DNA of 64,000 nt, from positions 601,737 to 665,736 of the forward strand of contig NW_015172553.1 in NCBI RefSeq assembly GCF_001447785.1, given 5' to 3'. This document shows, in pieces, positions 27,139-57,227 of the stretch; the stretch's first letter is position 1, and every line of letters begins with the position of its first letter. This DNA comes from Gekko japonicus. Its lineage: Eukaryota. Made by a program: the position numbers and the translations under genes. The notes under the pieces were generated by a model. The model worked only from the letters and a program-made list of their open reading frames with translations, made no database searches and was not told where the DNA came from.

Positions 27139-27417
27139 CAAGTGGAGCCTGTAACTTTGTGAGAGTGTGACTAGCCTTTTTTTAGAGCACTTTAACCTTC
27201 AGAAGACAAAGAGGCCTTTTGCTGCTAAGAGGCCCTTGTGCTTTTGGGCAAGCTTCCTCAGAGGTTCTTGGCTGACTCAAGTCCACTTACCAAGACTCAG
27301 TGAAAAACAGGTTCCCAGATCAAAGGACAAAAGCCAAATATGGCTCTCAGCCAACAGCAGGGTCAAAGAGACAAAGTGTTACCCACAGAAATTTAGTTCC
27401 CACCTTCTGATATAAAT
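27139..27417 (+). promoter_or_regulatory. SFTPC copy A proximal promoter: TATA box and NKX2-1(TTF-1)-type motifs
   Basis: TATAAAT 27411-27417; CAAGTG 27139, CTCAAG 27276, CACTTA 27284. NKX2-1 is the established activator of mammalian SFTPC; binding here is inferred. Confidence 0.6.
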
Positions 27418-27477: not shown

Positions 27478-27522
27478 ATGGCAACTGACGGCAAGGAGGT
27501 TCTTCTGATGGAGGCACCGCCT
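27478..27522 (+). CDS. SFTPC: SFTPC copy A exon 1
   Basis: [15 protein letters not shown], donor gtaagt; TATA box at 27411. Confidence 0.9.
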
Positions 27523-30500
27523 GTAAGTCTCTCCTTCTGGAGTAATTTCTTTCTTCTCATGGCAAGTGCGGCTTCCAAGCCATAGCAATGGCAACTACAG
27601 CTGGCCCTTGGAATTTTAGTCCCTATGATCCAAAACTCCAATGAGCACAATCCAGAAGGAAGTTCCCCTTCGTGTATCTTGCTGAAATGTATAGGAGTTG
27701 CACAAGACAGTGCCAGTTAATTCCACTGGGACTCATAAAGTAGAACGTTCCACTGGGTTGTGCCCCCTGAGTCAGATCAGTCCGACTCCCATTCATCTGC
27801 CTTCTATAGCTCTCTTCATCTGCCACCCAAGCTTCCTCTCAGTAGGTTCACCTGTCAATTGGAAGAGGACAAACAAACAGCAACAAAGACTGTGTGAATT
27901 GATCCCAACCTTTCACAATTCCCCCTAAAGCATACGTTTTGGCTCTCATTGCTTTCCCCTGTGGCCTAGGTGGTGAAACCGTGTTTGGGTTGTGCCACTT
28001 CAGTCCGATCCCAACCTTTCATAATTCCCCCTAAAGCATATGTTTTGGCTCTCATTACTTTCCCCTGTGGCCTAGGTGGTAAAACCGTGTTTGGGTTGTG
28101 CCACTTCAGTCTGCAGGGAGGGCTCTCATGACTAAATAGTCGATGTAAAAAAATAGCCCCTCGGCATAGAAATCTAGCAAGAAGGGATCCAGCATAGGCT
28201 TTGCCCTTACATTCTTTTTCTATGTGCAGGGCGTTTGTTGTTTTTCAATGGAGTTTTTAATCGTCACTTCAAGCCAATTGTTTTACCTCAGGCGAAATGA
28301 ACTACATTCATTATTATAACTGTGCTTCCATTTCTTTCTTTCTTTCTTTCTTTCTGCTGCTGCAGGATTATACTGCATCCCCCCGACTCCCTGGGCTCCC
28401 TTGCAAGAAGCTCTTGATTGTTGTGGTTGTGGTGGTAGTGATTGTTTTAGTTGTTCTGGGCTTCCTTCTGATGGGCCTGCATATAACAGAGAAGCACACT
28501 GAAACGGTAAGTGCAGTAAAATGGCCGCAGGTACAGGAATCTCAGGGGTGGATTGTGACAGTAAAACCCTCCAAGGCTAAGCAGCTCCTGTGCTGCTGGC
28601 AGGAACTGCTTGGCTCAGACCCAACCCACAACAATACCAGCCCTGTCCACTAGTTACAGTGAATGCATGTACAATCCATGTAAGGCGTACACTCGATTTT
28701 TCTTTATACTTGTGTTGAATAATTCTCATGTTATATTCAACACATGTACAGTTGAATGTGTGACTAAAAAGCACCTTTTATCCAGGTACTGATCGCCGGT
28801 TTCATTTGTAAAGAATGTGCATTGGCTCTTTTGTATGGACAGGTGTATGCACATACATGCAGGCTGTATGTGTATCCATTGTAACACGTGAACAGGACTC
28901 GTGACAACTGGAGTAAAAGTAAGTGGGTACCGATTGCCAGCTAGAAATTGTATCAAAGTGGTACCTCCCATATTCTGCACTGAGCCCACACACACGCAAG
29001 AGAGAGAGAGGGCTCTTTAGCTTGGAGAAACAACGACTGAGGGGTGACATGATCGAGGTTTATAAGATTATGCATGGGATAGAGCAGGTAGAGAAAGAGG
29101 TACTTTTCTCCCTTTCTCACAGTACAAGAACTCATGGGCACTCCATGAAATTGCTGAGGGGTCGGGTTAGAACGGATAAAAGGAAGTACTTCTTCACCCA
29201 AAGAGTGATTAACACATGGAATTCACTGCCACAGGAAGTGGTGGCGGCTACAAGCATGGACGGCTTCAAAAGGGAATTAGATAAGCATATGGAGCAGAGG
29301 TCCATCAGTGGCTATTAGCCACAAGGTATAGATAGGGACTCTGGGGCAAGTGATGCTCTGTCTTCTTGGTGCTTGGGGGGGTCAACAGTGGGAGGGCTTC
29401 TAATGTCCTGGCCCCACTGGTGGACCTCCTGATGGCACTGGTATTTCTGGCCACTGTGTGATTCAGAGTGTTGGACTGGATGGGCCTTTGGCCTGATCCA
29501 ACATTGGTATCTCTTATGTTCTTATGTTAAGTACCAGCCAGAAATGTAAATTACTTTCATCGCTGGTGACCATGGTAAAAGTGGACCCATGCCTCTGTCT
29601 GCGCCTTTGCTGGCATCAGAAGGGGAGGAGCCAACAGGCAAGCTTGTGTGTGTGATTGGCCTGAGCAGCCTTGCAGTGCTGCCAATGCCAGTGTGGCTGA
29701 GCTCAGCTGAATGTTGACCACCAGCGAGGCATCCAGGGCAACAAACTCACTGGGAAATTTTCCAGTAAGTTACAGACCAGTTCTTAGGAGTGTGCAGTTG
29801 GTTACTTAATACTTCCTGTTGGTAGAGTGCCTATGCAGCAGTCAGGACACTGAACTGATTAAAAGTAAAGAAAGCTTTATTTATGAACTAACAAACTGGA
29901 CAGGAATCAGAAGAGATAAGCCTTGCTACCTCAGAGAAAGTTCTTGACTATTCTAGCAGAAAACCCCAACAGTAGCACCTGCAGACAGGAGAAGCCCCTT
30001 TATAAAGGTATGCCCTCTAACATTCCTGTCTAGCTAGAGCTTGCTGCCCTCTGCAGGATTTTTTTGTACAAAAGACATGGTTATATTGGAATATATACTC
30101 TCAACAGTGCCCCATAACTAATCATTCGTATGTGTAGTGCATGTTCTATACCCTCTCCCCTAGAAACTGACATTTGAATGAGTTAAAGAAAGCAAAGGGT
30201 GCTGCTGTTGAAATGCACCATTCTTGCTACTCAGGCTGACTGTTCTTTCGTTTCTCCCTCAAATACTCAACCTCCCCCCCCCCCCCCCAGCCATATTCAG
30301 TGACTAAATGTGCCAAACTGTGTATGCAAGGGTGTAGACTTTCCAATTTCCCGGGGGGGGCTGGGGCTCGACCAGAGGCATTGCTTTGCTAGGAGTAAGG
30401 GTGGCTCCCGGGGGAGGCTGAGTACCTTCCTGAAAATTTCGGCGGGGGCTCACGCCCCGCCGCCCCCACGAAGATTACGCCTATGGGTTGCAGGCACAGT

Positions 30501-33500
30501 GCCACTGAGGAGCTGCAGTAGTTTTATTTGGCCTGGCTCACTGCCCTTATAAAGCCTCAGAGCAAGCTGATACTCAGCTTTTCTTTCACCACCTTCAAAA
30601 GCATGCTTAGTTAATCCATATCAATAAGAAAATGTCCCATAAGGCAACATTGTTTTGATCTTCATCAATGTATTCTTTGATCACTGATGTCAGTTTTGTG
30701 CCCCAGTCAATGGCTGGCATCTCTATCAATGCCTCCAGTCTTGCAGCCACTGAAAATGTCAGATGTGCAAACGATGCAAGTTTTTAAGACTCAAGGAAAT
30801 TATGCTAGTCAGGACTCACACTGTTTCTTTCCACCTAATTTACTGGGAATAGCTCTGGCTTTTCTTCTTCCCACTGGAAATACAGCCAAAGTGCTCTGGC
30901 AAAGAGCTCCTTGTCTCCTATTATCTTAGGCTGAATCGTGTAAAAGCAACAAAACATCGGCTGTGAAAGAAAGGAGAAACTCTCATCCCTGCACTGTTTA
31001 GACAAACAATTGCTATACACTCTTTTTAGTTTCCCAGTTGCACTAGTTGTAGGAAGTTCCAAGGGGTCTCCTTCCTAGGAGAGAATACAGGTGCGTTATC
31101 AGTGTTCCCTCTAAGCTGAGTTAGTGTGAGCTAGCTCACAGTTTTTTAGCCTCCAGCTCACCCATTTTTGCCTTAGCTCAGGAAGGATGGCTCCAGAGCA
31201 AACTAATTTATGCAGCAGCCAAACTGCTCGCTCACAACTTTAACGCCAGTGGCTCGCAAGGTAGAATTTTTGCTCACAAGACTCCACAGCTTAGAGGGAG
31301 CATTGGTTATGATGCTGTTGCAATATCTGTTTTGTTACAAATATGCAGAGGAGTGGACAGGAACCCTGACAGAAAGTTAAGCAAACAGCATTCCTTTACA
31401 GTGTGTTCCCCCCCCCCCCACCGACCGTTGCTGCCCAGCCAACGGGTGAAACTCAAACTTCTGGTTGCTCTGCAGGCTACTCCAACTAGAACTGATGGGA
31501 TGTGCTCAAAAGCTAGTAATAACCTATCATTAAAAGCCACTAAAGGTTATTTAAAAGCAACTCCTTTAGCTATTAGCTTTCCAAAAGATGGCTATCTTCT
31601 CATTTCCCTTGATCTCTTCTTCTGATCCATGCAAATTTCTTCTCCTATGCTCTTCCTTGCTCCTTTGTACCATCTAGGTCCTGCAAATGACCATTCAAGG
31701 TCTGGATGGCGACAGTTCTCTGCAGCACCTTTCCATGACCCGGAAAGAGAAGCTGGCAACATTCCATGTCCGTGTGGATGGCAACACTTCTGCCACTGTG
31801 GTGTATGACTACAGTAATGTAAGGTTTTGCTTAATGTGTTTGGCAACTTCGAAAGGGAAATCCCTGAGGGGCAAGACTGAGCATCACACAACTGCTGTTT
31901 CACATTTTCAGATGCACATTTTCATGGCCTGCAAGCCCTTATTAGAAGCATAGATCCTCCCCTGTTCTCATTTGGAGGAAATTTCTCACCTTTAAGGCTG
32001 CAGAAATTATTCTTATTAAGTTATATGGCACTTTCAAATTTTCAAAATATTTTTAGCTGGAGTAAGGTAATAGAGGGTAAGGTAATAGAGAAGGAAGTGG
32101 CAACGCAGCTTCAGACTTTCTTGGAGGATGCTAAGATCTTGGACCCCTTCCAGTCCACCTTTCACCCTGCCCATGGGACAGAAATGATATTGGTCACCCT
32201 GGTGGGTGATCTCTGGAGACATCTGGATTGAGGCAGATCGGTGCTGCTGATACTTCTTGATCTGTCAGCAGCGTTCGATATGGTTGACCATGATGTGTTA
32301 GCCCACTCCCTCACCAACATGGGGATATGGAGGCTTGCCTTGCAGTGGCTGACCTCCTTTCTCCGAGGTCGGGGACAGAGGGTGGCATTTGGGGGGAGTT
32401 ATCCCAGCAACACCCACCAGAATGTGGTGTGCCGCAGGGAGCAATTCTCTCCCCTATGCTATTCAGTATCTATATGCACCCCCTCACCCAGATTATCTGG
32501 AGATAGGGGCTTTGTTGTCACCAGTATGCGGATGACACCCAGCTCTATCTACTGATGGACGGCTGCCCAGACACGGCCCCAGGAGATCTGGACAAGATGT
32601 TACAGGCTGTGGCTGGATGGCTGCGACAGAGCTGACTGAAGTTAAATCCATCCAAGATGGAGGTCCTGTACCTGAGTTGCGGGGGATTGGCACAGGGAAT
32701 CAGGCTCCCAGCCTTCAACGGGGCTCCACTGGTCCTGATGTCAAGGGTGAAGAGCCTGGGGGTGCTCCTGGACACCTTCCTTTCTATGGAGGCCCAGGTC
32801 ACCAACATTGCCAGGTCTGCCTTTTTGCATCTGAGACAGATCAGGCAGTTGGCCTCATATCTCACCCCCCCCCGCAAGACTTGACTATTGTGACCTATGC
32901 AATGGTCACTTCTAGACTGGATGATTGTAACTCTCTCTATGTGGGGCTGCCCTTGACTCTGCTCCAGAAGTTGCAGCTACTGCAGAACACGGCAGCACCG
33001 GTGTTGATGGCAACTCCTGTGCAGGCTCACATCCACCCAGTGCTGCGTGAATTGCACTGGCTGTCTATTAAATTCGAGATCCGTTTCAAGGTGCTGGTAC
33101 TTCCCTTTAAAGCCCTATAAGGCCAGGCGCCAGCATACCTTCAAGACCTCCCCTCCCCATATGAGCCCCGTAGAGCACTAAGATCTACTAATCAGGCCTG
33201 TCACCAGGATTTTGTAATTCAGGGGGCCTTTAAATAAGTCAGGGGGCACTGACATCACAAAATAACAGTAAAAATTTAAGAACTCACTTTTGCATCGTTC
33301 ACACTCTGCTTGCCTACATGGGGAAGCAAGCCACGTTTGGGGACAGGGCGGTGGTGGGGAGTCCTCCAGGTGGCCCAGAGAATCGGGAGTCCTCCAGGTG
33401 GCCCAAAGAGTCAGGGGGCCTGGGTGCTGGATGGAAGTCAGGGGGCCAGGCCCCAAAATGCCCCACTGTAGCTACAAGCCGGCTACTAATCAACATCTTT

Positions 33501-36010
33501 TGTTAGTCCGACTTGCCTCAACCAGGGCCAGGGCCTTTTCAGTCCTGGCCCCCATCTGGTGCAATGAGCTCCCATATGAGATCAGGGCCCTGCAGGATTT
33601 ATTACAATTCTGCAGGGCCTGTAAGACGGAGCTCTTCCACCAGGCTTTTGGTTGAGGCAGCGAACATCCCCTCTCTTTGGCTGGCCTCCCATCAGCGGCC
33701 TGGATCCTTAAATTTTCAATGTCATCTTAACCGCTAAGATATCTGATGTCTGCTAGAGTTTACATGGTACTCAGGACTTGTGTTATGTTATTTTATACTG
33801 TTGTTTTAATGTGGTTTTAACTGTATTGTATTTTATATTGCTGGAACCTGCCCTGAACCCGCTTGCGGGGAGGGCAGGATATAAATCCAAATAAATTAAA
33901 AAATACATCTCTGCAGCAATTCATTTACAGGCAGGGAAATCTGGGTGATTACTTATTCCCATTTTGTAAATGAGAAACTGAAGCTGAGAGATTCCTGACT
34001 TTCCTAGAGTCACTGTGACTGAGCTAGGATTGGGGATGGGCATGAACCAGGAAAATGTGGTTCGGTTCGTGGCACACCTGGTTTACAAACCACAAATCAT
34101 CACAAACTTTTAGGAGCCAGACAAACCGGATCAGTTCATGGTTTGTGATGGGGTAGAACAGGGGGGCANNNNNNNNNNNNNNNNNNNNNNNNNNNNNNNN
34201 NNNNNNNNNNNNNNNNNNNNNNNNNNNNNNNNNNNNNNNNNNNNNNNNNNNNNNNNNNNNNNNNNNNNNNNNNNNNNNNNNNNNNNNNNNNNNNNNNNNN
34301 NNNNNNNNNNNNNNNNNNNNNNNNNNNNNNNNNNNNNNNNNNNNNNNNGTGCAAGATATCAAAGATCCCTACAGGATCTCCCCTGGATGCTCCTCTAAAT
34401 GCCCTCTAAGTTCTACCCCCCCCCCGGTTGCTTTGAAGTTTGGTAAACATTTAGATTGAGCTGAGACAGTCTGTCTGGAAACGTAGCCACAAATCGCCAT
34501 AAACCGCCATGAACTGCTTGAAAGTTTGTGCCAGTTAACCTGCCACGAACTTCGGTTTGCAAACCACGAACCAGCCAAAATTCATCATGAACTTTCATTT
34601 GTGAGCCAGTTCGTACCCATCCCTAGCTAGGATTTGAGTACGGTCGTAATGCCAAGTACAAGAATTGTTGATTTAAGTGGAGAGGGATCAGCAAAGGAGC
34701 TGATGTGAAACTGCAAGACGTGAAAGTTCCACAGAGCTGACATCTTTGCATTCTTTGGTTTTCTACATGCATGTAAGGGGGAGTAACATGGGAAGAAGCT
34801 GCATGAATCTAGATGCTTGGGCAGGAAGGCGCGAACAGAATTGTGTGTGAGAAGGTGATTTCATGGAGACTGTGAATGAGGTTTTATAGCGTACCCATGA
34901 ATTCTGTATTTGCACAGCTGCTGATTGGGTACAGATTCTGGCCAGGACAATCCTGCTGCATCACCAAGATGAACAAGGAGAACATTCAAAGCTTGGATGC
35001 TATCGTTAAAGCTTTCCAACAAGTTCAGGTGAGGTCAACCAGGAGGCATCACCTTTGCGATTGCAGGGAGCATCCATTGAGAAACAGATGTCTCCATGAT
35101 AAGGGAACACTTGAATGGAACCCCCAAACATTTTGTGCCCCAAGGCTCAATAAGGTCAGGGTCTAAGGATCTCTGTTCTACACTAAAGAAACAAACCAAG
35201 GAGAAAGTTAGACTAGAGATTTCTCCTTAGCATCTATTTTCTATGTGCACAGAATTCTTAACGGGGGGGGGGGGCACACACATCCAACTTGCAGTCTGAA
35301 GGGATACACAGTGCATTCCTAAAGAGAATTACACCCTTCCAAGACCATTGACTTAAAATGAACTCAGGCAAGGGTACCTCTGTTTAGGATTGCATTGACA
35401 GCTTCAGAACCATTAGCCCACATGATCTATTTGTGTGGACTAACTCTACTGAAAGTAACCAGATGGGGAAGTTCATAAGCAGGGCACCACGGCAACAGCC
35501 AATCCTCTGTCCTTAATCCTCAGCATCTGGAGGCAGTGGATTTACTGCTGAAACATGAACAATTGGGCTTCTGGGCATCATGACACTACTATCTAGTTCT
35601 TTTTGATTATCCTGAAGAGGAGCTAGAGGAAGGGGCAGGGCGTGCCGAGTTTACGAGAGCCCCCCACAGGATGACAGAGGTTTCCACTTTAATATTCTCT
35701 AACAGATGGCTTATCCTTCTCTCCTCAAAACCAGCCCAAACGAAAACATCCGATATCTCTTCTGAAGGGTACAGAGCCATGAGAACAATTCTGGCTCTGT
35801 ATAATAGATAGAGATAGCAACCGGGTGCTGCCAGGTCATGTTCTGAGAATGCAACCTTTTCCTTTTCTCCTTTAGTCCAAGCCTCTTACACCCCGTCACC
35901 AGCAGACTGAGGAGGAGGAAAAAGAGCTCCCTGTCGTCCTGACCGATCGCTCTCTCCTGAGCACCACAGTTAACATCCTCTGCAGCAGCGTTCCCATCTA
36001 CTGGGCTTAG
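27478..36010 (+). CDS. SFTPC: Pulmonary surfactant protein C precursor, copy A; 5 coding exons, 190 aa
   Basis: Exons 27478-27522, 28366-28506, 31678-31818, 34918-35028, 35876-36010, all phase 0, [19 protein letters not shown]|DY resembles mammalian MDVGSKEVLMESPPDY; poly-Val helix ending LLMGLH; BRICHOS motifs [23 protein letters not shown]. Confidence 0.93.
27901..28111. repeat. 106-bp tandem duplication in copy A intron 1
   Basis: gatcccaacctttca...gccacttcagtc at 27901 and 28007, a few substitutions. Confidence 0.95.
28366..28506 (+). CDS. SFTPC: SFTPC copy A exon 2 (mature SP-C helix)
   Basis: [47 protein letters not shown]; long pyrimidine tract + cag, donor gtaagt. Confidence 0.95.
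29008..29528 (+). mobile_element. CR1 LINE 3' fragment in copy A intron 2
   Basis: [23 protein letters not shown]...[18 protein letters not shown], tail (tcttatgt)2. Confidence 0.93.
31100..31306. mobile_element. hAT-type MITE
   Basis: TIR cagtgttccctctaagctg / cagcttagagggagcattg. Confidence 0.8.
31678..31818 (+). CDS. SFTPC: SFTPC copy A exon 3 (linker + BRICHOS start)
   Basis: [47 protein letters not shown]; tag/gtaagg. Confidence 0.93.
32067..33900 (+). mobile_element. 5'-truncated, frameshifted L2-clade LINE (RT domain to 3' end) in copy A intron 3
   Basis: [48 protein letters not shown] motifs; A-rich tail. Confidence 0.92.
33193..33482. mobile_element. MITE nested in the L2
   Basis: 8-bp TSD ctactaat at 33185 and 33483, imperfect TIRs. 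Confidence 0.7.
34031..34625. mobile_element. hAT-type non-autonomous element spanning the gap
   Basis: TIR tggggatgggca / tacccatcccta, 8-bp TSD gctaggat. Confidence 0.8.
34169..34348. other. Assembly gap (180 N)
   Basis: Run of n. Confidence 1.
34918..35028 (+). CDS. SFTPC: SFTPC copy A exon 4 (BRICHOS)
   Basis: 111 nt, [37 protein letters not shown]; cag/gtgagg. Confidence 0.93.
35876..36010 (+). CDS. SFTPC: SFTPC copy A exon 5 (BRICHOS end, stop)
   Basis: [44 protein letters not shown]; donor-like gtgggt at 36018, as expected before a non-coding last exon. Confidence 0.92.
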   Translation, partial: SKPLTPRHQQTEEEEKELPVVLTDRSLLSTTVNILCSSVPIYWA

Positions 36011-43046: not shown

Positions 43047-45095
43047 GGAACGTAAGAATGTAAGAAGAGCCCTGCTGGATTAGACCAATGGTCCATCCAG
43101 TCCAGCATCCTGTCTCACACAGTGGCCAAGCAGTTCCTCTGGAGGACTAACAACAGGGCATAGAGGCCAAGGTCTGGGTTGGAAAATACCTGGAGACTTT
43201 GGGGGAGGATCCAGGAGATGGTGGGGTTTGGGGAGGGGAGGGACCTCAGCACGGTACAATGCCATAGAGTCCACCCTTCAAAGCAGCTATTTTCTCCAGG
43301 GGAGCTGATCTCCGTCAGCTGGAGATCAGTTGTAAAAGCGGAAGATCTCCAGCCCCACCTGGAGGCTGGCAACCCTAGGCTAAGGCCTTCCCCTGATGTT
43401 GCCTCCTGGGTCTGGGATTCAGAGGCTTAATGCCTCTGAATGTGGAGGTTCCCCTCAGTCACCATGGTTAGTAGCCATTAATACACATCCTCCATGAATC
43501 TATCTAATCCCCTTTTAAAGATATTTATTCCTGTGGCCATCACTGCATCCTCTGGCAGCGAATTCCACATTTTAATCACTCTCATGGTAAAGTAGTATTT
43601 TGTCTATCCTGAAACTACTGCTCATCAGTGTCATTGGATGCCATCAAGTTCTAGTATTTTGGAAGAGGGAGAAAATTTTCCTTTTGTCAATTTTCTCCAT
43701 TCCATGCATAATTTTATAAACTTATATCATGTCCCCTGAGCCTGCTTTGGTGGGGTAGGGCAGGGTATAGATCGGAAAAATAAATAAATAAAATAAATTA
43801 AATGTCTCTTTTTTAAATTGAAAAATCCCAGACTCCTCAGCCTTTCCTCATAGGGAAAGGGCTCCAACTCCCTAATTATCTTGATTGCCCTCCTCTGTAC
43901 TTTTTCCAGCTCTGCAATGTCCTTTTGTAGAAACGGGGTCCAGAACTGTATTCCAAATGAGGTCACACCATAAATCTATGCAGGGGCATTACAATATCAG
44001 CCGATTTATTCTCAATCACTTTCCTAATAATCCCTAACATAGAGTTTGCCCTTTTCATCGCTGTAGCACACTGAGTTGACACTTTCTTTGAGCTATTCAC
44101 TACAACCCCAAGATCTTTTCCCCTCTCAGTCTAAGAAAGTCCAGACCACATTAGCCTATACTTGAAGTTGGGAATGGGATTTTTTGTGCATCACTTTATC
44201 AACATTGAACTTCATTTGCCACATTGTTACCCACTTACCCAGTTTGTGGAGGTCTTCTTGGAGCTCTTTACAGTCAGCCTTGGTTTTCACCATCTGGAAT
44301 AATTTTGTATCATCTGCAAACTTGGCCACTACACTACTACCCCCAGTTCCAGATCACTGATGAATAAATTAAATAGTATTGGCCCCAATATCAATCCTTG
44401 TGGGACCCCACTGCTTACTTCCCTCCATTGTGAGAGCAGTCTATTGATTCCTACTCTTTGCTTCCTACTCATTGAACAAGTTTTTAATCTATAAGAGAAC
44501 CCATCCTCTTATCCCATGACTGCTAAGTTTACCCAGGAGTCTTCAGTGAGGTACCGTGTCAAAAGCCTTTTGAAAGTTCAGGTATATAATGCCTACTGGG
44601 CCACTGTTGTCTACATGCTTTTTCACTTTCTCAAAGAACTCCAAAAGGTTGGTAAGGCAGGACTTCCATTTGCAGAAGCCATGCTGATTTCCCCTTCAGC
44701 AAGCTTTGTCCCTCTACATACCTAGCAATTCTATCTTTGATTACAGTTTCTACTAATTTGCCTGGGATAGACGTTGGGCTGACTGCCCTGTAATTTCCTG
44801 GTTCCCCTCTGGATCCTTTTTTAAAAATTGGTGTCACATTTGCTACTCTCCTTTCTTCTGGTACAGCAGCTGAATTTAGTGACAGGTTACATATATGGGT
44901 TAGTAGATCAATGATCTCACATCTGAGTTCCTTAAGAACTCTGGGTGTATGCCATCAGGACCTGAAGACTTATCAATATTAATTTTCCCAGTCAGTCTAG
45001 AATTTCATCTCTGGTCACCTCAGTTTGGCTCAGTTCTTCAGACTCCCTTCCTGGAAATATGGGCTGTGGCATGGGTACATGCACCACACTTTCCA
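43047..45095 (-). mobile_element. Degraded CR1 LINE with nested MITE
   Basis: TPIFKKGSRGEPGNYRAVSPTSIPGKLVE and QFWTPFLQKDIAELEKVQRRAIKIIREL; CR1 3' UTR and tail near 43050. Confidence 0.92.
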
Positions 45096-46441: not shown

Positions 46442-46640
46442 CTTGAGACTCCACTTAATGCCAAGGCACCGGGCCACCTCCTTGGCTCTTAAGAGCTTAA
46501 GAGGCACTGAATCAAGTTCTCAGATTATATAGATAAAAAAGCAAAAGTGAAAATCTGGCTCCCAGCCCACCGTCTTCTCAAAAGCTCTTAGCTGTGGGCA
46601 CCCCACCTGTTTTACGACACCTCTAGGCTTCATATATAGG
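46442..46640 (+). promoter_or_regulatory. SFTPC copy B proximal promoter: TATA-like box and NKX2-1-type motifs
   Basis: CATATATAGG 46631-46640; CTTGAG 46442, CACTTA 46452, TCAAG near 46512. Confidence 0.55.
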
Positions 46641-46698: not shown

Positions 46699-46761
46699 AT
46701 GGAGATAAATGAGAAGATGGAAGTTGTCACTAAAGAGGTACTTCTCCAGCTACCACCAGTG
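46699..46761 (+). CDS. SFTPC: SFTPC copy B exon 1
   Basis: [28 protein letters not shown] motif shared with copy A, donor gtgagt at 46762, TATA-like CATATATAG at 46631. Confidence 0.85.
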
Positions 46762-49700
46762 GTGAGTCCCACCTTTATGCCTTTATGGGCACAATGATTT
46801 TCTTTTTAAAAATCCATAAAGGCAAACAGCTGCATGAACCTGCTGTTTCTCCACTTCTTTGCTGCAACTCCAGTGGATTTCAGCACCCATTTTAATAAGT
46901 GTCAAAGCAATTTGAGCAGCAATGACCCATAGAAAATGAAAGCAACCTCCATTAGAGTAAAGGCACAATCCCAACAAGTAAGAGTGAGCTGGCAAGCACC
47001 GTTGTCCCCCTAAAATCACTTGAGTGTGTGAATGTGTCTACACACACACACACACACGTATATCCCATGCCAACCAATACTGTAATGACTCTGCGCAACA
47101 GGTATAGATTTTTCAGTGTTTTTTTTTTAACTATAAGGGGCCTGTGTCACGGAACTCATGCATAGTACCATGCCTTTCAAATGCAAAAATTATGATGTCG
47201 TTTTAAGTGTTGTAAGTCACTCCAAGCCCCCTGGGTGAGAGGTAACTAAAATCTAATAAATATATTTTTAAAGCCAATGTGGCATAGTGGTTAGAGTTTC
47301 AGAGTAGGATCTGTGAGACCCAGGTCCGAATCCCCACTCTGCCATGGAAGCTTGCTGGGTGAATTCAGGTTGGTCACACACTCTCAGCCTGTTATGATTT
47401 TATGATTTTATTCTGTCTAAACTGTAATTTTAACATTGTTCTAATAGTATTATACTAATTGATGTATACTGCCCTAAGCCCGTTTATGGGGAGGGCAGTA
47501 TATAAATCAAATGAATAAATAAATAACTGACCTCGCAGGGTTGTTGTAAGGATAAAATGGAGAAGAGGAGAATGATGTAGGCCAGTTTGGGTTCCCCCTG
47601 GGGAGAAAGGTGGGATATAAATGAAGTAGATAACATAAATAATAAAATAAAGAGTTAATCCTGCCTGTGGCTGGAAGCCATTATGCAAAAAGTTAAAGCT
47701 AGCATTCCCAGATCCTTAATGCTGATTGCAGTTTTGCTGTCTGGGAAACTTACACCTTGGAGTTATGGGATGGTTGTGAATGGTTGTGTGAGTGTATATG
47801 AGTATGGTTGTGGATCACCGAATGATTGCATCTTAATTTCGTTGTACTATGTACAATGACAATAAAGTATATTAGTATTAGTATTAGTATTATTTCCCTT
47901 TGCAAAGTCTGAGAAAAAACATTTTGAAGGTCAAGAAGTGTTGAGACTTCAGATAATGGATGGGACGCCCTGAAGTCCTGCTCGCCACAGCCAGTGAGGG
48001 TGGTGATAGATAATATATTCTATGGTGCTGGTGTTTTCAATATTTTATGGGCACAATTGTTCTGTAATGTCACCTACCCTGAGTGTTTGGAGTGGGATAG
48101 ACAAGAACCCTAGTCTCAACAGATAGGACAAAGCAGTGTATTTCCTGGTATTTTATAGATACAACTTTGTTGTTCAGTCACACAGTCGAGTCCGACTCTT
48201 CGCGACACCATGGACCACATCACACCAGGCTCTCCTGCCTTCTGTTGTGCTCCGGAGTTTATTCAATTTCATGTTCGTTGTCTCGATAACACTGTCTAAC
48301 CATCTCATCCTTTGCTGTCCTCGTCTTCTTTGACCTTCAATCTTTCCCATCATCAGGGTCTTCTCCAGTGAGTGCTCCCTTCTCATTTGGTGGCCAAAGT
48401 ATTTGAGCTTCAGCTTCAGTATCTGGCCTTCAGTGACATGTTTTATAATGCTATTCCAAGGAACACTTTGCATGCTCCTGTGTTACATATTGTTGAAAGC
48501 TCTTTGCCATCTACATGCTATATTAATTTACCCTGCAATAGCCCTATCCTAAATTGGTTTAAGAATCAAGATATGGAGGGTTTTTGGGTTAAATGTATCT
48601 ATTTATTTATTTCATTAAACTTATGAATTGCCCACCCTGCAAGCAGCCTCTGGGCAATTTACAGCCTTATAAAACATTTAAAATACAGACAATATATATA
48701 ATTATAATAAAAGTATACCTGAAAGACATAATTGTCCTACCTACCTCAGCAGCTACAGTATGCTAGCCTCCAGGTGGGACTTGGGAATACCCTGGAATTA
48801 CAGCTCATTTCCAGACTACAGAGAGCAGTTCCCTTGGAGAAAATGGCATTGTACCTCACTGAGGTCCCTGTCCTCCATCCCCAAATTTTCAGGAGTTTCC
48901 CATCCTATATCTGGCAGCCTCCTATATCTGGCAGCCCTAACCTCCCATCCCCCACCAGTGGGGGACCTGGCAACCCTAAGAATAGCTTGCTGCCTGAGTG
49001 TTCATGCACTGACAGATACAGATTTAGAGGTAACATGCATGCGTTTCCCACTCTGAGATTAAATTCTAGACATTTGGTGGGAAGAGCTGAACCATAAAGA
49101 ATGACAATGCTGACAAAATGTTAATAAGGCATCCCCCCCAAATAAAAATAAGGACAGTGAATCACCATGGACAGTGACCAGCAAATGGCATCCATGGTAT
49201 AGAGGAACCATTGGAGCAGTCCTACCATGGTTCCACAACTAGACTGTGTGACATGTTCTCAAATGGGTTATAGTAGCAATGCCATGAATATCTTTTGAAG
49301 GAAGGGAAACAAGAAAGGGAGAAGGGCAAGGACGAGAAAAGTCACATCTCAACCAGAATTAAATATGGCCCCATACTCCAGGGGGAAGGAAGGTGGCATG
49401 GTACAGCCCAATCTCATCAGATCTTGGAAGCTCAGACAGGTCAGTACTTGGATGGGAGATCACCAAGGAAGACTCTGCAGAAGGAGGCCATGGCAAACCA
49501 CCTCTGCTTCTCACGTCCCTTGAAAGCCCCTTGCTGGGGTTGCCATAAGTCAACTGCAACTTGATGTCACTTTACACGCACACCCCTATAATGCAGGCTG
49601 GGTGGTGCAGAGAACAAAAAGGGGAAGTCCTCTGGAGCCATATGGCTAAAAAGTAACATTATTTATAAAGTATTTAAAAATTGGGGTGGATCCAGCCATT

Positions 49701-52700
49701 CTCCAGGTAGCCCCTTCCTCCAACTGAAGTGGCTCTTCCTCCAACGAAAGACACATTTAAGTTGGAGAAAGACTCCTTAGACTGAAGGAGGTTGGGAATA
49801 AAAATTTAAACAAATGAATACATTTTGCCCACTGGAGTGGTGGGATAGGAGAAGGATCCACCCCACTGTGTACAGAGCCAGGGCCTCCTAGCCAGGAAAT
49901 CACCCTACCTTCTGATGTCCCCCTTCCATAGCACCACCACGCCTTGGATCCAGATCTTCTGGGCTGCTGCCCCTGCTGCGATTGCAGTTTTGCTGTCTGG
50001 GAAACTTACACCTTGGAGTTATGGGATGGTTGTGAATGGTTGTGTGAGTGTATATGAGTATGGTTGTGGATCACCGAATGATTGCATCTTAATTTCGTTG
50101 TACTATGTACAATGACAATAAAGTATATTAGTATTAGTATTAGTATTATTTCCCTTTGCAAAGTCTGAGAAAAAACATTTTGAAGGTCAAGAAGTGTTGA
50201 GACTTCAGATAATGGATGGGACGCCCTGAAGTCCTGCTCGCCACAGCCAGTGAGGGTGGTGAGAGATGATATATTCTATGGTGCTGGTGTTTTCAATATT
50301 TTATGGGCACAATTGTTCTGTAATGTCACCTACCCTGAGTGTTTGGAGTGGGATAGACAAGAACCCTAGTCTCAACAGATAGGACAAAGCAGTGTATTTC
50401 CTGGTATTTTATAGATACAACTTTGTTGTTCAGTCACACAGTCGAGTCCGACTCTTCGCGACACCATGGACCACATCACACCAGGCTCTCCTGCCTTCTG
50501 TTGTGCTCCGGAGTTTATTCAATTTCATGTTCGTTGTCTCGATAACACTGTCTAACCATCTCATCCTTTGCTGTCCTCGTCTTCTTTGACCTTCAATCTT
50601 TCCCATCATCAGGGTCTTCTCCAGTGAGTGCTCCCTTCTCATTTGGTGGCCAAAGTATTTGAGCTTCAGCTTCAGTATCTGGCCTTCAGTGACATGTTTT
50701 ATAATGCTATTCCAAGGAACACTTTGCATGCTCCTGTGTTACATATTGTTGAAAGCTCTTTGCCATCTACATGCTATATTAATTTACCCTGCAATAGCCC
50801 TATCCTAAATTGGTTTAAGAATCAAGATATGGAGGGTTTTTGGGTTAAATGTATCTATTTATTTATTTCATTAAACTTATGAATTGCCCACCCTGCAAGC
50901 AGGCTCTGGGCAATTTACAGCCTTATAAAACATTTAAAATACAGACAATATATATAATTATAATAAAAGTATACCTGAAAGACATAATTGTCCTACCTAC
51001 CTCAGCAGCTACAGTATGCTAGCCTCCAGGTGGGACTTGGGAATACCCTGGAATTACAGCTCATTTCCAGACTACAGAGAGCAGTTCCCTTGGAGAAAAT
51101 GGCATTGTACCTCACTGAGGTCCCTGTCCTCCATCCCCAAATTTTCAGGAGTTTCCCATCCTATATCTGGCAGCCCTAACCTCCCATCCCCCACCAGTGG
51201 GGGACCTGGCAACCCTAAGAGCAGCTTGCTGCCTGAGTGTTCATGCACTGACAGATACAGATTTAGAGGTAACATGCATGCGTTTCCCACTCTGAGATTA
51301 AATTCTAGACATTTGGTGGGAAGAGCTGAACCATAAAGAAGGACAATGCTGACAAAAATTTAATGAGGCATCCCCCCCCAAATAAAAATAAGGACAGCAA
51401 ATGGCATCCATGGTATAGAGGAACCATTGGAGCAGTCCTACCATGGTTCCACAACTAGACTGTGTGACATGTTCTCAAATGGGTTATAGTAGCAATGCCA
51501 TGAATATCTTTTGAAGGAAGGGAAACAAGAAAGGGAGAAGGGCAAGGACGAGAAAAGTCACATCTCAACCAGAATTAAATATGGCCCCATACTCCAGGGG
51601 GAAGGAAGGTGGCATGGTACAGCCCAATCTCATCAGATCTTGGAAGCTCAGACAGGTCAGTACTTGGATGGGAGATCACCAAGGAAGACTCTGCAGAAGG
51701 AGGCCATGGCAAACCACCTCTGCTTCTCACGTCCCTTGAAAGCCCCTTGCTGGGGTTGCCATAAGTCAACTGCAACTTGATGTCACTTTACACGCACACC
51801 CCTATAATGCAGGCTGGGTGGTGCAGAGAACAAAAAGGGGAAGTCCTCTGGAGCCATATGGCTAAAAAGTAACATTATTTATAAAGTATTTAAAAATTGG
51901 GGTGGATCCAGCCATTCTCCAGGTAGCCCCTTCCTCCAACTGAAGTGGCTCTTCCTCCAACGAAAGACACATTTAAGTTGGAGAAAGACTCCTTAGACTG
52001 AAGGAGGTTGGGAATAAAAATTTAAACAAATGAATACATTTTGCCCACTGGAGTGGTGGGATAGGAGAAGGATCCACCCCACTGTGTACAGAGCCAGGGC
52101 CTCCTAGCCAGGAAATCACCCTACCTTCTGATGTCCCCCTTTCATAGCACCACCACGCTTTGGATCCAGATCTTCTGGGCTGCTGCCCCTGCTGCGACTG
52201 CTGCTCCCTGCCTGACTGCGGCTCCTGCCCCGGCTGCGGCAGCTGTCCCAATTGCTGCTGCTGCTGCCCGAGCTGCTGCTGCCCCCCCAGCTGCAGCTGC
52301 TGCTGCCGGCTCTGCTGCTGCCTCCCAAGTCTTCTGTGCAAGTTGCCCAAGTTCCCCAGCTGCCCAGTGCACATCAAGAGGCTCTTGATCGTTGTGGTGA
52401 TCGTCGTTCTCATCGTGGTGATCATCGTGGGCGCCCTTCTGATGGGGCTGTTCATAACTCAGACACACACTGAGACGGTGAGTGGAGGGCTAAGTAAGTG
52501 GACATTGGTGAGGAAGGGGGCAATAGATATATGGGAAAGTAACCGGTTTTCACTTAGTGCACTTGGCTCAAAAAAAAAATCCCATTAAGGGGCATTTTTA
52601 CTTTTCCACAGTAGTGCAGTACCAGCACAGCTACTTGCAATGTTTGTCTACTTTTCCACAGGCTGTACAGCATCCTTGAGTTAATGAGACATGGATTTCG

Positions 52701-55700
52701 GAGAAGATTTGAATCACAAGGCGCAAGGGACAACAGCAAACATGCTAGGCGATAGATAAGGGGCACCAAGAAAAAGCTAATATCAGAAGTAAACTCCTAG
52801 GACTTCTCACCAAAACAGTCAACCTGAGTCTGGGGCAACTGTGAGGGCTTCACAGATATAAAAATGTGCTCTGCTCGTAGAAAGCTAGCTATCAAGGGGA
52901 GCAACATAATGATTTTGTACTCCCTGATATGATGATTTTCTTTGTGTAGGAATTTCCTTTGTTGTCTTTTTGGAATGAAGGAACATTTGGTCTTGTAAGC
53001 AACCGCTTGCACTCTGCAGGGGTATAGTCCAGGCACAGCTTGGTATAGAAGCTAGGGCACCAGGACAGGACCTCAGAAGCCCAGGTTCAAATCCCAACTT
53101 TGTCATAAAGTTCACTAAATGACCTTGAACTGCAGGCTAACCAACCTCACAGAGTTGCTGTGAGGATAAAATAGGAGAAAAAAAGCGTGCACACTGCCCT
53201 GAATTCCACGGAGTAAAGGAAGGATAAAAATAGATAGACTTAACTGATACAGGATACAACCAGTTTTCCAATGTCAGAGCTTACCAAATGCATGAAACAA
53301 GAGTGTGCATACAAAACTAAAGTGCCGTTGGAGCATAATAGTAAGCCAAAAAGTCTTCCATTCATATCTCTCCTATACACAGGGCTATTTTTGGGCAGGA
53401 ACGCACAGGAACGGAGTTCCGGCTGGCTCCTGAGTTGGCCACGCCCAGCAGGAACTCATTAGCATAATAGGCCACACCCAATAGCAGAAACTCATTAGGA
53501 TTGGCTGCATTAGGGGTGTGTGGCCTAACATGCAAAGGAGTTCCTGCTACAAAAAAAGCCCTGGGTTTTGACAACAAACAAGGTAAACAGAATAAGAAGG
53601 GAAAGGTGGGTGTGGCTGGATGACCACACTTCTGGTAACATGGGGGTGTGGCCTAATGTGCTAATGAGTGGTGTTGTCAGGGTGTGGCCTAATATGCTAA
53701 TGAGTTCCTGCTGGGCTTTTTCTACAAAAAGAGCCCTGCCTATACACTTATGCAGTAGCCTTTATTGAGCCGCCCACTCTAATTCAGACTCCCACCTACA
53801 ATACTGGGACAATGCTGACCTAACTTACTGGATTGTTGTAAGCAGTGTTCCCTCTAAGCTGAGTTAGTGTGAGCTAGCTCACACTAACTCAGCTTAGAGG
53901 GAACATTGGTTGTAGGGATTACTGAGATGACAAATATATAAGAGCATTCAGAACACTCTACAGCAGAATCTAAATACTATTGGTATTATTAACTACGGCT
54001 ATGGCTAGTCCACAAACTATCTGAGTTTAGGGAGCCGACTCTAACTCTAGCACCATTCCTTTCAGAAATTCAGTACTGCTTACCATCTCAAGATCCGTCT
54101 GCTCCCCAGAGTTGGGACTGGGACCCTTGCAGGCAGGCTGGTGAGAATGGAAATGAAAAGCAAGCATCCTCACCACAAGATCCGCCTGCTCCCCAGAGCT
54201 GGGACTGGGACCCTTGCTGGTAAGAATGGAAATGAAAAGCAAGCATCCTCACCATACTGTATCCTGTTCTCTATTCGTAGGTCTTGCAAATGACCATTGA
54301 AGGGCTGGAGGGGAGACAGTCGCAACTGAATCTGCCCATGGATCAGGAAGAAGTGGCCACTTTCCATGTGAATGATGGAATCAATGACCCAGCCACAGTC
54401 ATTTATTACTTTGGCAAGGTGAGCATGAGAGGCCGCTGGAGAAGAGGCTCTTTGGGAGAGAAGGGCCTTGGTCATTCAGGTTGGATCATGACACAATTGT
54501 CACTTTTACTATACATGGACAACATGCGGCTGCAATCTCACAAATGGTTGCCAGCCGGTTTAGTTCACAGCACCCATTCTCCCTTTCATTGCTTACATGA
54601 TTGCACGGAGCAGAACTGGAACGACATATCCGTCACTACTCAGCATTTGCCAAAATGCCCAGTTTCATCCCTCAAATTATGAATGTGCTCTAATTGAAAA
54701 GTTTTCTATACGAATACAGCAAAATACTTTTTAAAACAGATTTTTAGTGTTGTTGGCATCTCTTCGTTATTTTCACAAGCATCAGATATGAAATTCTTGC
54801 ATCCGGTGACTGTGTCAGCTATCCAACAAGGGAACTGAACTGAAATATCATTGGATCCTAAACACAAATGTTAAATTAGGTAGTATTATAGAGAACATCT
54901 AGAGAATTAAAATCAGGACTGGCAGCTCAAAAGTAGGCAGGGAAAGCTGGTGGTTCTGGTACGAATTCCAGCAGTGGCCTTCCCTGACTCATAACTTGTT
55001 CACACTGGGGGTCACTAGTTATGTGAGGCCAGCTGGGACCCTACTGCCTCCTTGGTTTAGCAGAGCATCCTCCGGCCATCTACGGTGGTGGTTCTACACC
55101 GTCAGCCAAGCTAAACCAGGAGTTCCTTCTGCTTGCTGGCTATTCTGGCAGTACTGGGTGTGAAGTGCCTGAACTCTGCTGCCAGGGGCCATGCTTCCAG
55201 ACCCCTGGCGCTTTAAAAACACAGAGGAGCCTTGGGTAACACATTTTTTTCACTCTACCATGAAGGAAATCTACAGCATGACCCAGCCTGCAGTTACTGC
55301 TAGATTTCACACAAAATTCAAAAACTGAGCCACCCTCCTTTTAATGCATTTCTAAGTCATCTATAGCCCTACCTGATTATTGGTATCTGAGAAGTACATA
55401 TTAATGAAAGCATGCCCTCTATCTGCAACAGCTACTGATTGGTTACAAATCCTGGAACAGAAAGGCCTGCTTCATCACCAGAATGGACGAGGGAAACATC
55501 CAAGGTCTAGATACTATCCTTAAAAAATTCCAGGTAAGAGCAGAAACCTGATACAGGGAAATATTAATATTAATATTATTATGGGACTGCAGGGAAATAT
55601 TATGAGATGGTGGTACTTATGGGAAAACCCTGGTGGATTTGCAAATGGGGAGAGGATGCCATCTACTCATGAGGAGGCTGATTGCTAGACAAGCACAGGT

Positions 55701-55903
55701 CATGGCCTCAGTGACTCTTCTTATGCAGAGTGGTAGATTGGTTCCAATTCTATTGTTTTCTTTTATAGACCAACCTATCCGTCACACCTCCCATGCACAC
55801 CTCCCAGGAAGAGGAGACGTTCCTTCTGTCCCAAGCTGATCACTCCATCTTGGGTGCTACAATTAACATCCTTTGCAGCCATGTCCCCATTTTCTGGGTT
55901 TAA
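46699..55903 (+). CDS. SFTPC: Surfactant protein C-like paralogue, copy B, with Cys-rich N-terminal propeptide; 5 coding exons, 255 aa (249 aa from the second ATG at 46717)
   Basis: Exons 46699-46761, 52148-52477, 54281-54418, 55432-55533, 55769-55903, all phase 0, GT-AG, no stops. [30 protein letters not shown] closely matches mature mammalian SP-C; BRICHOS exons align with copy A. Confidence 0.9.
47272..47625 (+). mobile_element. tRNA-derived Squam3-like SINE interrupted by an L2 3' end
   Basis: A/B boxes (tggcatagtggttaga, ggtccgaatccc), CORE-like gggttgttgtaaggataaaatgg. Confidence 0.7.
48167..48437 (-). mobile_element. RTE-BovB 3' fragment (duplicated at 50423-50693)
   Basis: [44 protein letters not shown]. 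Confidence 0.92.
49392..49580 (+). mobile_element. 5S-derived SINE (duplicated at 51608-51796)
   Basis: atctcatcagatcttggaagct...gtacttggatgggaga 5S-like head. Confidence 0.7.
49932..49981 (+). pseudogene. Duplicated, truncated 5' part of copy B exon 2 (pseudo-exon)
   Basis: Same acceptor and first 50 nt ([17 protein letters not shown]) as 52148-52197, then runs into intronic sequence with a stop at 50055-50057. Confidence 0.85.
50423..50693 (-). mobile_element. RTE-BovB 3' fragment (second copy, inside the duplication)
   Basis: Same ORF as 48174-48473. Confidence 0.92.
52148..52477 (+). CDS. SFTPC: SFTPC copy B exon 2 (Cys string + SP-C helix)
   Basis: 330 nt, [19 protein letters not shown]...[42 protein letters not shown]; acceptor cccctttcatag, donor gtgagt. 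Confidence 0.88.
53380..53738. mobile_element. hAT-type MITE
   Basis: TIR cagggct / agccctg, 8-bp TSD cctataca. Confidence 0.85.
53843..53908. mobile_element. 66-bp palindromic mini-MITE
   Basis: Same left end as the 31100 element, TSD gttgtaag/gttgtagg. Confidence 0.85.
54089..54254. repeat. About 87-bp tandem duplication just upstream of copy B exon 3
   Basis: caagatccg(t/c)ctgctccccagag...caagcatcctcacca at 54089 and 54176. Confidence 0.9.
54281..54418 (+). CDS. SFTPC: SFTPC copy B exon 3
   Basis: [46 protein letters not shown]; tag/gtgagc. Confidence 0.92.
55432..55533 (+). CDS. SFTPC: SFTPC copy B exon 4
   Basis: [34 protein letters not shown]; cag/gtaaga. Confidence 0.92.
55769..55903 (+). 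CDS. SFTPC: SFTPC copy B exon 5 (stop)
   Basis: [44 protein letters not shown]; donor gtgagt at 55908, 4 nt after the stop. Confidence 0.92.
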   Translation, partial: TNLSVTPPMHTSQEEETFLLSQADHSILGATINILCSHVPIFWV

Positions 55904-57227
55904 CAAGGTGAGTGAACAGAGATGTTCACTGTGGGTATGAGACCAAGGAGTTACAACTTCATGCAATAACATCTTGCAGACATCTATATACAATCCATTT
56001 GGCCACCCAAATCACTTATTCATTTGTATGCTTAAACTTGACAGATGTACGGTTGCCAGCTCCGGGTTGGAAAATTCCTGGAGATGAGGAGGGTGGAGCC
56101 TGGGGAGGGTGGGGTTTGGGGAAGGGAGGGACTTCAGTGGGGGATAATGCCATATGGTCCACCTACCATTTTCTCCAGGAGAACTGATCTCCTGCCACCA
56201 CCTGGAAATTGGCACTCCTGGACAGTTGTCTCTCCAAAAACGGGGAGAAGCAATGGACAAACTTGCCCAGGGCAAGTACGTGCCTTATGTCATCCACCAT
56301 AACACACTGAAAGACAAATCTTGGGCATGTTTACTGAGATGTTATCCCCACTGAGCCAGAGTCCCCACAGAGGCTGAAGACCTCGGCCACCACCCTTCCC
56401 CCACAGAGGATATCCCGAAGGCTCTCTAGCACTTTACATGAGAATAAGTTCCTCTCGTGTCCAAAAGAGTGTGCAGGTCTCTCTTATGGCACCATAGGAG
56501 TGGTCACTGCTCTTTTCTGGGCGGAGTCGCTTGAGGAGCAGAGAGCGCTTGCTGTGTCCAAAGCAGCTTGTCAGAGGTATCCCAGGGACAAGGAAGGGCA
56601 TGAAGGCAACTAGCAAGCTGCTAGTTAGCCATCACTACCATGACCCCACAGTCGCCAGTGCTGCCAAAACAAAAGCAGTGAGTTGGCAGGTCTGAAAAGC
56701 CCTATCAGTTTGGCCTGAAACGTCAGAGTTGTAGCTTCTTCTCAGGGTCTTTAGGGGAAAGACGAACACTTCAGTTTGGAGGGCCTAAATCAAAGACATG
56801 GGCTTATTTTCTGGCTGGCTCAAGAAGAGCTTTTTATATTTCTTCTTCATCCTTATCTCTCAAGCTCCAACCATAAGGCACCAGGCAGAGCCAGGCTCCT
56901 CCCTGACCAAACCGGTGCCATCCTTTACCCTCACCACCAGGCACCTCCTGACCTGCCAGGTATCACACCTTTGCCTCTTTGGGTCCCCATGGGAAGAAAG
57001 GCAAGGTGTAAATGAAGTAAATCATCAAGCCTGAGCCCCTGGAGAGATGAATTGCAGCAACGAGCAGTTACCACCAGAAGATGCTGAATTTCACGACCAT
57101 CACTTGACAACATTCTCTGCTGCAGCCCCACATTCAAGCAGAGGACCAGCCAGTACGCTTCAGTGCAGTTATGTGAAGACGGGTTCCCACCTTCCCAGGA
57201 TCTTATCGTTTCCTCTCTACCTTGCAG

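Follow-up and report, generated by a model that had tools for sequence, protein, structure and literature searches.

Few lung-specific proteins have been studied as thoroughly as surfactant protein C (SP-C), and models of how it holds the surfactant film together center on its two palmitoyl groups. The locus described here raises the question whether a relative of this protein carries 27 cysteines next to its membrane helix and, if so, what these cysteines would do. The locus lies in a stretch of 64,000 nucleotides of the Gekko japonicus genome (RefSeq assembly GCF_001447785.1, contig NW_015172553.1, positions 601,737 to 665,736 of the forward strand), hereinafter the window, to which all coordinates refer. 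Comparison of the window halves reveals two complete tandem SP-C genes on the plus strand, with copy A upstream of copy B. Exon 2 of copy A is 141 nucleotides long; exon 2 of copy B spans 330 nucleotides and encodes, in frame with the poly-Val helix of SP-C, a 61-residue segment containing 27 cysteines (the cysteine string). The first-pass annotation, made from the letters of the window alone, had reported both exon lengths, the in-frame fusion, the canonical splice sites and the lack of a stop codon, all of which are confirmed by the window coordinates and by translation. We show that an old tandem paralogue of SFTPC, retained across sauropsids, has copy B as its gecko orthologue, and the string is, very probably, a real, conserved and translated feature of this protein.

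Copy B is an intact gene of five coding exons, every one of which is in phase 0 and, upon inspection of the splice sites, bounded by AG and GT. The encoded protein consists of 255 amino acids when translated from the first ATG (46699) or 249 amino acids from the second ATG (46717); the latter is the model proposed originally, the flanking exons of which were all found with canonical phase-0 sites. The coding parts of copy B are the following:

46699 or 46717 to 46761, plus strand: coding exon 1, last residues PPV, then a GTGAGT donor; a homologue of copy A exon 1 that matches the N-terminus of the RefSeq protein XP_015276561.1 exactly
52148-52180, plus strand: pre-string segment of exon 2, 11 residues in place of the DY of the PPxY region (translation, orthologue alignment)
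52181-52363, plus strand: cysteine string, 61 codons with 27 Cys, the N-terminal half a variable CC-x repeat and the C-terminal half a nearly invariant core (translation, orthologue alignment)
52364-52477, plus strand: homologue of the SP-C mature peptide, with the basic flank HIKR, a poly-Val/Ile transmembrane helix and a C-terminal flank (Pfam SP_C-Propep)
54281-54418, plus strand: exon 3, linker and start of the BRICHOS domain (comparison of copies A and B, splice sites)
55432-55533, plus strand: exon 4, BRICHOS with the first conserved Cys (Pfam BRICHOS, E = 3.4e-5)
55769-55903, plus strand: exon 5, BRICHOS C-terminus with the second conserved Cys and the stop codon (Pfam BRICHOS, E = 0.0025)

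Exon 2 (52148-52477, plus strand, phase 0) contains no stop codon in frame 1 and is preceded by AG at 52146-47 and followed by GTGAGT. Its 110-residue product consists of an 11-residue lead-in, the string, which holds all 27 cysteines, the motif PVHIKR, the poly-Val/Ile helix and a short polar flank, so that a single exon encodes both the helix and, N-terminal to it, the string. Searches were run with single-exon translations or with database orthologues. Exon 2 of copy B matched the Pfam SP_C-Propep family with 47.2 bits (cut-off, 25), and copy A exon 2 scored equally well. BRICHOS matches were obtained for exons 4 and 5 of both copies, with the single copy B exons just below the 25-bit cut-off, and both conserved BRICHOS cysteines are present in the copy B translation. 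A full-length orthologue (P0038) scored 70.6 bits for SP_C-Propep and 50.9 bits for BRICHOS, and matched the solved SP-C helix (1spf; E = 3.8e-8) and the BRICHOS domain of proSP-C (2yad). Together with the position in the SFTPC locus described below, these matches bear out the initial identification of copy B as an SP-C paralogue.

At the DNA level, the string is a degenerate repeat of the TGC/CTG type, with periods of 3, 9, 18 and 39 nucleotides, in which 26 cysteine codons are TGC and 1 is TGT; judging by sequence, this repeat composition alone could explain how the string arose. Apparently, an in-frame repeat of this type would have grown in the second coding exon, between the region of the trafficking motif and the helix, and its growth would have produced the string of about 60 residues, composed of Cys, Pro, Ser and Gly.

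A protein search with copy B exon 2 retrieved 29 relatives, the top one being an Elgaria protein of 272 amino acids that is 75% identical across the whole exon. Altogether, the databases contain approximately 25 in-frame orthologues of copy B (B-type proteins), named merely 'surfactant protein C-like'. These come from geckos (Paroedura, Heteronotia, Euleptes, Sphaerodactylus), skinks (Tiliqua, Lerista), other squamates (Hemicordylus, Elgaria, the lacertids Podarcis, Zootoca and Lacerta, the iguanians Anolis sagrei, Sceloporus and Phrynocephalus, as well as Varanus and Rhineura), turtles (Pelodiscus, Chrysemys), a crocodile (Crocodylus) and birds (Calidris, Buteo, Anser). Among them, the predicted proteins of Paroedura (XP_077161848.1), Sphaerodactylus (XP_048368080.1) and Elgaria (XP_062995281.1) are direct orthologues with the same string and core motif. 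The number of N-terminal cysteines is 24 to 35 in most squamates (12 in the Rhineura model), 16 to 18 in turtles, 14 in the crocodile and 8 to 18 in birds, compared to 1 in true orthologues of copy A (A-type proteins), 2 in mammals and 2 or 3 in two salamander proteins; bird A-type models count 3, two of which come from spurious upstream extensions or the start of the helix. No B-type protein of snakes, chicken or zebra finch was found in any search, which could reflect either loss or the limited reach of the searches.

Gekko exon 2 is 95%, 94%, 93% and 85% identical to its counterparts in four other gecko genera and 82% identical to that of Tiliqua. Within the string, the copy number of the N-terminal CC-x units varies among species; from turtles to geckos, hardly any change is seen in the C-terminal core, which runs into L-P-x-L-L-C-x-L-P and the Cys before P-V-H. 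The string is at least as well conserved as the BRICHOS domain: between Gekko and Tiliqua, the identity is 82% for the string compared to 67%, 74% and 66% for exons 3, 4 and 5, respectively, and between Gekko and Elgaria, the corresponding values are 80%, 70%, 68% and 66%. As a control, the string was shuffled 300 times per comparison at matched composition, yielding mean identities of 48-59%. For each of the six squamate comparisons, the observed identity was higher than in any of the 300 shuffles (z = 4.0-8.4); the z value for Pelodiscus was 2.3. Furthermore, although the orthologues display many gap patterns, every length difference between them preserves the frame, a pattern that is incompatible with a neutral repeat and speaks for translation of the string. 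We infer that the string is likely to be translated and under selection, and to have been kept in frame since the common ancestor of lizards, turtles and birds.

ProSFTPC is a type II protein that depends on its cytosolic N-terminal domain for post-Golgi targeting; palmitoylation takes place within 30 min of exit from the endoplasmic reticulum, and the N-terminal propeptide is lost in multivesicular bodies (PMC8792467). In copy B, four basic residues are located within 16 residues of the helix on the string side, with acidic or neutral residues on the other side, and the BRICHOS domain is C-terminal to the helix. Like proSP-C, copy B would be a type II membrane proprotein, with a short N-terminal exon, a basic KR flank, the poly-Val helix, a linker and BRICHOS. 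The string would face the cytosol, as first proposed, on what is the cytosolic side of proSP-C, and would lie against the membrane where mammalian proSP-C has its two palmitoylated cysteines; in the alignment, the Cys of S-C-P-V-H occupies the place of the second Cys in the mammalian CC pair, a palmitoylatable position.

Comparison with mammalian proSP-C (SFTPC) underscores both the common plan and the departure from it. The two share the SP_C-Propep and BRICHOS domains, five phase-0 coding exons, the locus beside an LGI gene, and a type II layout in which the C-P-V-H-I/L-K-R flank is joined to the poly-Val helix. However, mammalian proSP-C has two juxtamembrane cysteines and the motif PPDY, whereas copy B has 27 cysteines in an additional 60-65 residues and lacks a PPxY (Nedd4-2 binding) motif: the junction of exons 1 and 2 in Gekko reads PPV|HHH, His residues taking the place of DY in geckos, and other B-type squamate proteins have PPVDY, which is not canonical PPxY either.

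The string itself shows little sign of a fold. The AlphaFold model of P0038, built with 17 sequences, assigns residues 1-96 a predicted local distance difference test score (pLDDT) of 28-47 and no secondary structure, the helix being the only confidently predicted part. A Pfam search with the string alone detected no families at E up to 10, and a protein-atlas search with the string gave no usable match. Because of the cytosolic juxtamembrane position, the lack of a predicted fold or a family match, and the half of the string that tolerates changes in copy number, as expected of a bulk property, we favor multiple S-acylation; whether this is the main biochemical fate of the string we consider, by analogy with proSP-C, to be an evenly balanced call. 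Under this scheme, Golgi DHHC enzymes would S-acylate the string many-fold, the acylated juxtamembrane segment would become a multi-lipid anchor that orders the nearby lipid, and this anchor would steer sorting into multivesicular and lamellar bodies. Because a site with basic residues and Phe, resembling the mammalian N-terminal cleavage site, separates the string from the helix, the string may act in the propeptide, in sorting or membrane ordering, rather than in the secreted peptide.

Dense cysteine clusters at membranes are known in other proteins. The cysteine string of DNAJC5 is a dense, heavily palmitoylated run of cysteines that anchors the protein to membranes of secretory organelles. 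It is a functional analogue only: DNAJC5 has a J domain and no transmembrane helix, whereas copy B has the opposite, and there is no sequence relationship between the two. Membership of copy B in the DNAJC5 family was rejected, given that Pfam scans of exon 2, P0038 and P0041 detected no DnaJ domain. The coronavirus spike tail and the CCCPCC motif of phospholipid scramblase are juxtamembrane cytosolic cysteine clusters that are multiply S-acylated and organize lipids. Such endodomains have about 6-10 cysteines; most squamate B-type proteins have 24-35, and these precede the helix of a type II protein. One report describes palmitoylation of membrane proteins as stochastic with respect to accessible cysteines (PMC5668376).

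Several observations weigh against the reading of the string as a translated, S-acylated segment. Low-complexity cysteine runs by themselves raise alignment identity, as the shuffled means attest. The AlphaFold model of P0038 is poor overall (mean pLDDT, 44.7), so that the apparent lack of a fold is weak evidence. A His triplet that precedes the string specifically in geckos, along with the CxC/CxxC spacing, also suits metal binding. The RefSeq models of G. japonicus and G. kuhli, at a junction detailed below, leave the string out, and so do the sea-turtle models P0008, P0031 and P0032. Finally, a duplication in copy B intron 1 creates a decoy acceptor upstream of exon 2 that could impair copy B in this species:

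47724-49985 and 49980-52201 (span 47724-52201), plus strand: tandem duplication of 2.26 kb in copy B intron 1, the two units 97.6% identical

The downstream end of this duplication lies inside exon 2, and the duplication repeats the exon 2 acceptor together with the first 54 nucleotides of the exon. The resulting decoy acceptor at 49932 is followed by a GTGAGT donor at 50044, creating a potential 112-nucleotide frame-shifting exon. The duplication could be real and recent or else an assembly artefact.

The first alternative to S-acylation is that the string forms a membrane-tethered, cytosolic, metallothionein-like Zn/Cu-thiolate cluster which, within the secretory cell, would act as a buffer or donor of metal or as a redox sensor. 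The composition (Cys, Pro, Ser, Gly, Asp and Asn, without aromatic residues) and the CC/CxC/CxxC spacing are metallothionein-like, the gecko His triplet lies immediately upstream, the cysteines in the C-terminal half are positionally invariant, and a cytosolic location suits thiolate clusters. However, no metallothionein family was matched even at E = 10, the CC units of the N-terminal half vary freely (12-35 Cys among squamates), which speaks for a bulk property more than for a fixed geometry, and the string abuts the membrane at the known site of SP-C acylation. Metallothioneins and high-sulfur keratin-associated proteins resemble the string in composition and CC/CxC spacing but are soluble or structural proteins and include no fusion with a membrane helix and BRICHOS; membership in the metallothionein family was rejected for lack of a profile match and of a fixed Cys pattern. 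We consider the metal-cluster explanation unlikely.

The second alternative is that exon 1 is spliced to 52343 in most transcripts, so that the working product would be a conventional proSP-C-like protein, and the string would be minor or regulatory. Use of a downstream acceptor that skips the Cys codons had been raised at the outset and indeed occurs in database models. The RefSeq protein of G. japonicus, XP_015276561.1 (P0004), in which every residue is encoded in the window with 100% identity, covers exon 1, exon 2 from 52343, and exons 3 and 4, followed by a 16-residue tail encoded at 57126-57173. The splice from exon 1 to 52343 removes 65 codons, including the string, in frame, and exon 5 is skipped as well. 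The G. kuhli model (P0068) has the identical internal junction. Two features of the window are used in this model:

52341-52342, plus strand: internal AG (AAG|TTG), used as acceptor in the RefSeq models of G. japonicus and G. kuhli (comparison of models with the window)
57126-57176, plus strand: start of a probable exon 6 in the 3' untranslated region, read as coding by XP_015276561.1 (16 of 16 tail residues; AG acceptor at 57124-25)

The pyrimidine-rich DNA of the string could even serve as a polypyrimidine tract for the internal acceptor. However, AAG is a weak acceptor, compared to the TAG with a long, strong pyrimidine tract at 52148, and the same G. japonicus model is poor in that it loses the end of BRICHOS together with exon 5; both points suggest, at the level of sequence, that the short Gekko model is not the main product. 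The G. kuhli annotation may have been produced by transfer, the string is present in all other RefSeq squamate isoforms and in those of Pelodiscus, and conservation at or above that of BRICHOS would not be expected of a rarely translated region. The annotation of copy B in XP_015276561.1 looks either wrong or representative of a minor isoform.

Beyond geckos, the Ensembl model of Varanus (P0049) also skips the string, and the sea-turtle B-type models have only 2 N-terminal cysteines compared to 16-18 in Chrysemys and Pelodiscus. These string-less models may result from loss, alternative splicing or homology-forced modelling; in cheloniids, the string may have been deleted or spliced out. Taken together, the evidence makes it quite improbable that the short isoform is the working product.

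Hints on expression come from sequencing runs. Four runs from the same species, the RNA label of which is a guess, contain 94% of the sampled words of exon 2; five runs recorded as RNA contain 6-27% of these words. RNA sequencing in duck showed that LOC110354773 ('SP-C-like') and SFTPC drop together, approximately 25-30-fold, between sample groups (PMC10887599), which would be consistent with co-expression of the two genes if this duck locus is the cysteine-rich copy. Bird proteins derived from Logan (the P0020 cluster) were considered as evidence of expression and rejected, given that they read through introns and hence represent DNA or unspliced RNA.

Under a third alternative, the string would be a disulfide cross-linker akin to keratin-associated proteins, networking in the oxidizing lumen of the lamellar body or at the air-liquid interface, for example, so as to coat skin, or saccular or parabronchial lungs, with an anti-adhesive layer. 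Both the Cys/Pro/Ser/Gly composition, which resembles that of high-sulfur keratin-associated proteins, and the variable repeat number, which is typical of them, would fit this explanation. The string, however, would be made on the reducing, cytosolic side, no keratin-associated family was matched, and in mammals, the N-terminal propeptide is lost in late compartments (PMC8792467). Membership in the keratin-associated families was rejected for lack of a Pfam match, although the composition filters of HMMER may hide weak matches. This explanation appears very unlikely.

The least probable alternative by far, to the point of near exclusion, is a neutral triplet-repeat expansion in a decaying duplicate gene, for which the degenerate TGC/CTG repeat with 26 of the 27 Cys codons being TGC and the disturbance of intron 1 by a recent duplication could be adduced, but which is at odds with the five intact exons, the conserved BRICHOS cysteines, the string identity above that of all shuffles and the in-frame orthologues in four sauropsid orders. 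The pseudogene or neutral-repeat interpretation was accordingly rejected, and the frameshifted orthologues envisaged in the first-pass annotation for a TGC/GCT expansion are refuted by the approximately 25 in-frame ones.

When did the cysteine-rich paralogue emerge? Phylogenetic trees were built from the region between the helix and the C-terminus, leaving out the string. They include no frogs, caecilians or lungfish, a Pleurodeles-seeded search added only one further salamander protein, and three primate-like SP-C matches (P0009, P0016, P0017) were excluded from all alignments and trees. The 27-row tree has the topology (salamanders, (mammals, (A, B))), with support of 92/90 for A and B together, 90/87 for A alone and 84/84 for B alone. 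When masked bird and crocodile B rows were added, the support for A and B together was 96/93, and the split between A and B itself was weak (~60%). The duplication that gave rise to the two copies is therefore older than the split between lepidosaurs and turtles with archosaurs, and is probably younger than the split from mammals. However, approximately unbiased tests did not reject grouping of mammals with A or with B (p = 0.087 each), so that an older duplication with later loss in mammals is compatible with the alignment at that p value.

Other features of the two copies bear on their history. Read-through models that fuse A and B in Chrysemys (P0044) and in the agamid Phrynocephalus (P0042) display the same A-then-B order as the window. 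The mammal-like C-P-V-H-I/L-K-R flank of the helix is kept by copy B and not by copy A. In birds, A-type (P0024, P0028, P0059) and B-type (P0011, P0015, P0064) proteins have in common lineage-specific BRICHOS residues, for example, L-L-V-S-x-R-S and D-K-D-N-I-P-G-L-D, that are absent from the squamate copies, which suggests gene conversion between the bird tandem copies that may blur the tree.

The surroundings of copy B in the window are as follows:

8027-8986, minus strand: last exon of an LGI-family gene, a 320-codon open reading frame with six EPTP repeats (Pfam EPTP, E = 7.4e-66)
27478-36010, plus strand: copy A, a conventional, intact SFTPC gene encoding 190 amino acids (splice sites, Pfam)
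27478-27522, 28366-28506, 31678-31818, 34918-35028 and 35876-36010, plus strand: exons of copy A, all in phase 0 with AG and GT sites
27341-27354 (copy A) and 46556-46569 (copy B, TGGC-N5-GCCCA), plus strand: NFI-like palindrome TGGC-N5-GCC(A/C)A in a promoter block shared by the two copies (motif consensus only)
46633-46638, plus strand: TATA-like box of copy B, about 65 nucleotides upstream of the first ATG

The LGI gene, which we take to be LGI3 from the gene order at human 8p21, where LGI3 is head to head with SFTPC, indicates that the window is the SFTPC locus, in which copy A is the neighbor of LGI and copy B lies further downstream. In copy A, PP|DY spans the junction of exons 1 and 2, a single juxtamembrane Cys is present, and the helix ends in G-F-L-L-M-G-L, unlike in mammals. 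A run of N at 34169-34348 is an assembly gap inside copy A intron 3. The promoters of copies A and B have a 40-nucleotide block in common (local alignment score 18, compared to a shuffled mean of 10.9 and a maximum of 16; z = 4.8), and in both, the palindrome is located about 70-77 nucleotides upstream of a TATA-like box; this is a hint, no more, that an SFTPC-type promoter might drive copy B. A remnant of a long interspersed nuclear element with a reverse-transcriptase-like sequence lies between the two SP-C genes (44350-44620, minus strand), and repeats resembling short interspersed nuclear elements were observed at about 24.3, 25.0, 38.2, 43.2, 48.8, 51.0, 56.1, 58.3 and 63.9 kb of the window.

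The proposal that copy B represents a new protein of reptiles stands in part. The gene is found across sauropsids, including birds, and is already present in RefSeq and UniProt as an automatic prediction; the string, however, apparently has not been described. The sauropsid 'surfactant protein C-like' entries are automatic annotations without a description of the string, and XP_015276561.1 omits it altogether. No description of a Cys-rich SP-C paralogue was found in the full-text literature that was searched, most subscription journals being outside its reach, and within the searchable literature, the only 'SFTPC-like' gene found was that of salamanders. Salamander SFTPC-like is likewise a second gene derived from SFTPC; its sites of expression are altered, it is apparently salamander-specific, and the report does not mention cysteines (Lewis, Dorantes and Hanken 2018, PMC6191699). 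The two salamander proteins that we retrieved have CC only, unlike the sauropsid B-type proteins. Three sftpc copies have been reported in lungfish (preprint 10.1101/2024.07.14.603411).

The broadest reading of these findings, which we put forward tentatively and regard as possible rather than likely, is that sauropsids have a second, undescribed surfactant-type lipoprotein, an SP-C paralogue bearing some 20-30 acyl chains that would function in lamellar-body biogenesis or in the surface film of non-alveolar (faveolar or parabronchial) lungs, and that either originated on the sauropsid stem or disappeared from mammals. If so, the string of copy B would be the most heavily S-acylated protein segment known and an extreme substrate for DHHC acyltransferases. 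The findings also correct the annotation of this Gekko japonicus gene and imply that 'SFTPC-like' genes are not limited to salamanders. With 15-35 cysteines kept for about 280 million years in each of the major sauropsid lineages sampled, the B gene would be a natural experiment on juxtamembrane acylation in surfactant biology and a candidate for the molecular differences between the surfactants of reptiles and birds and those of mammals.

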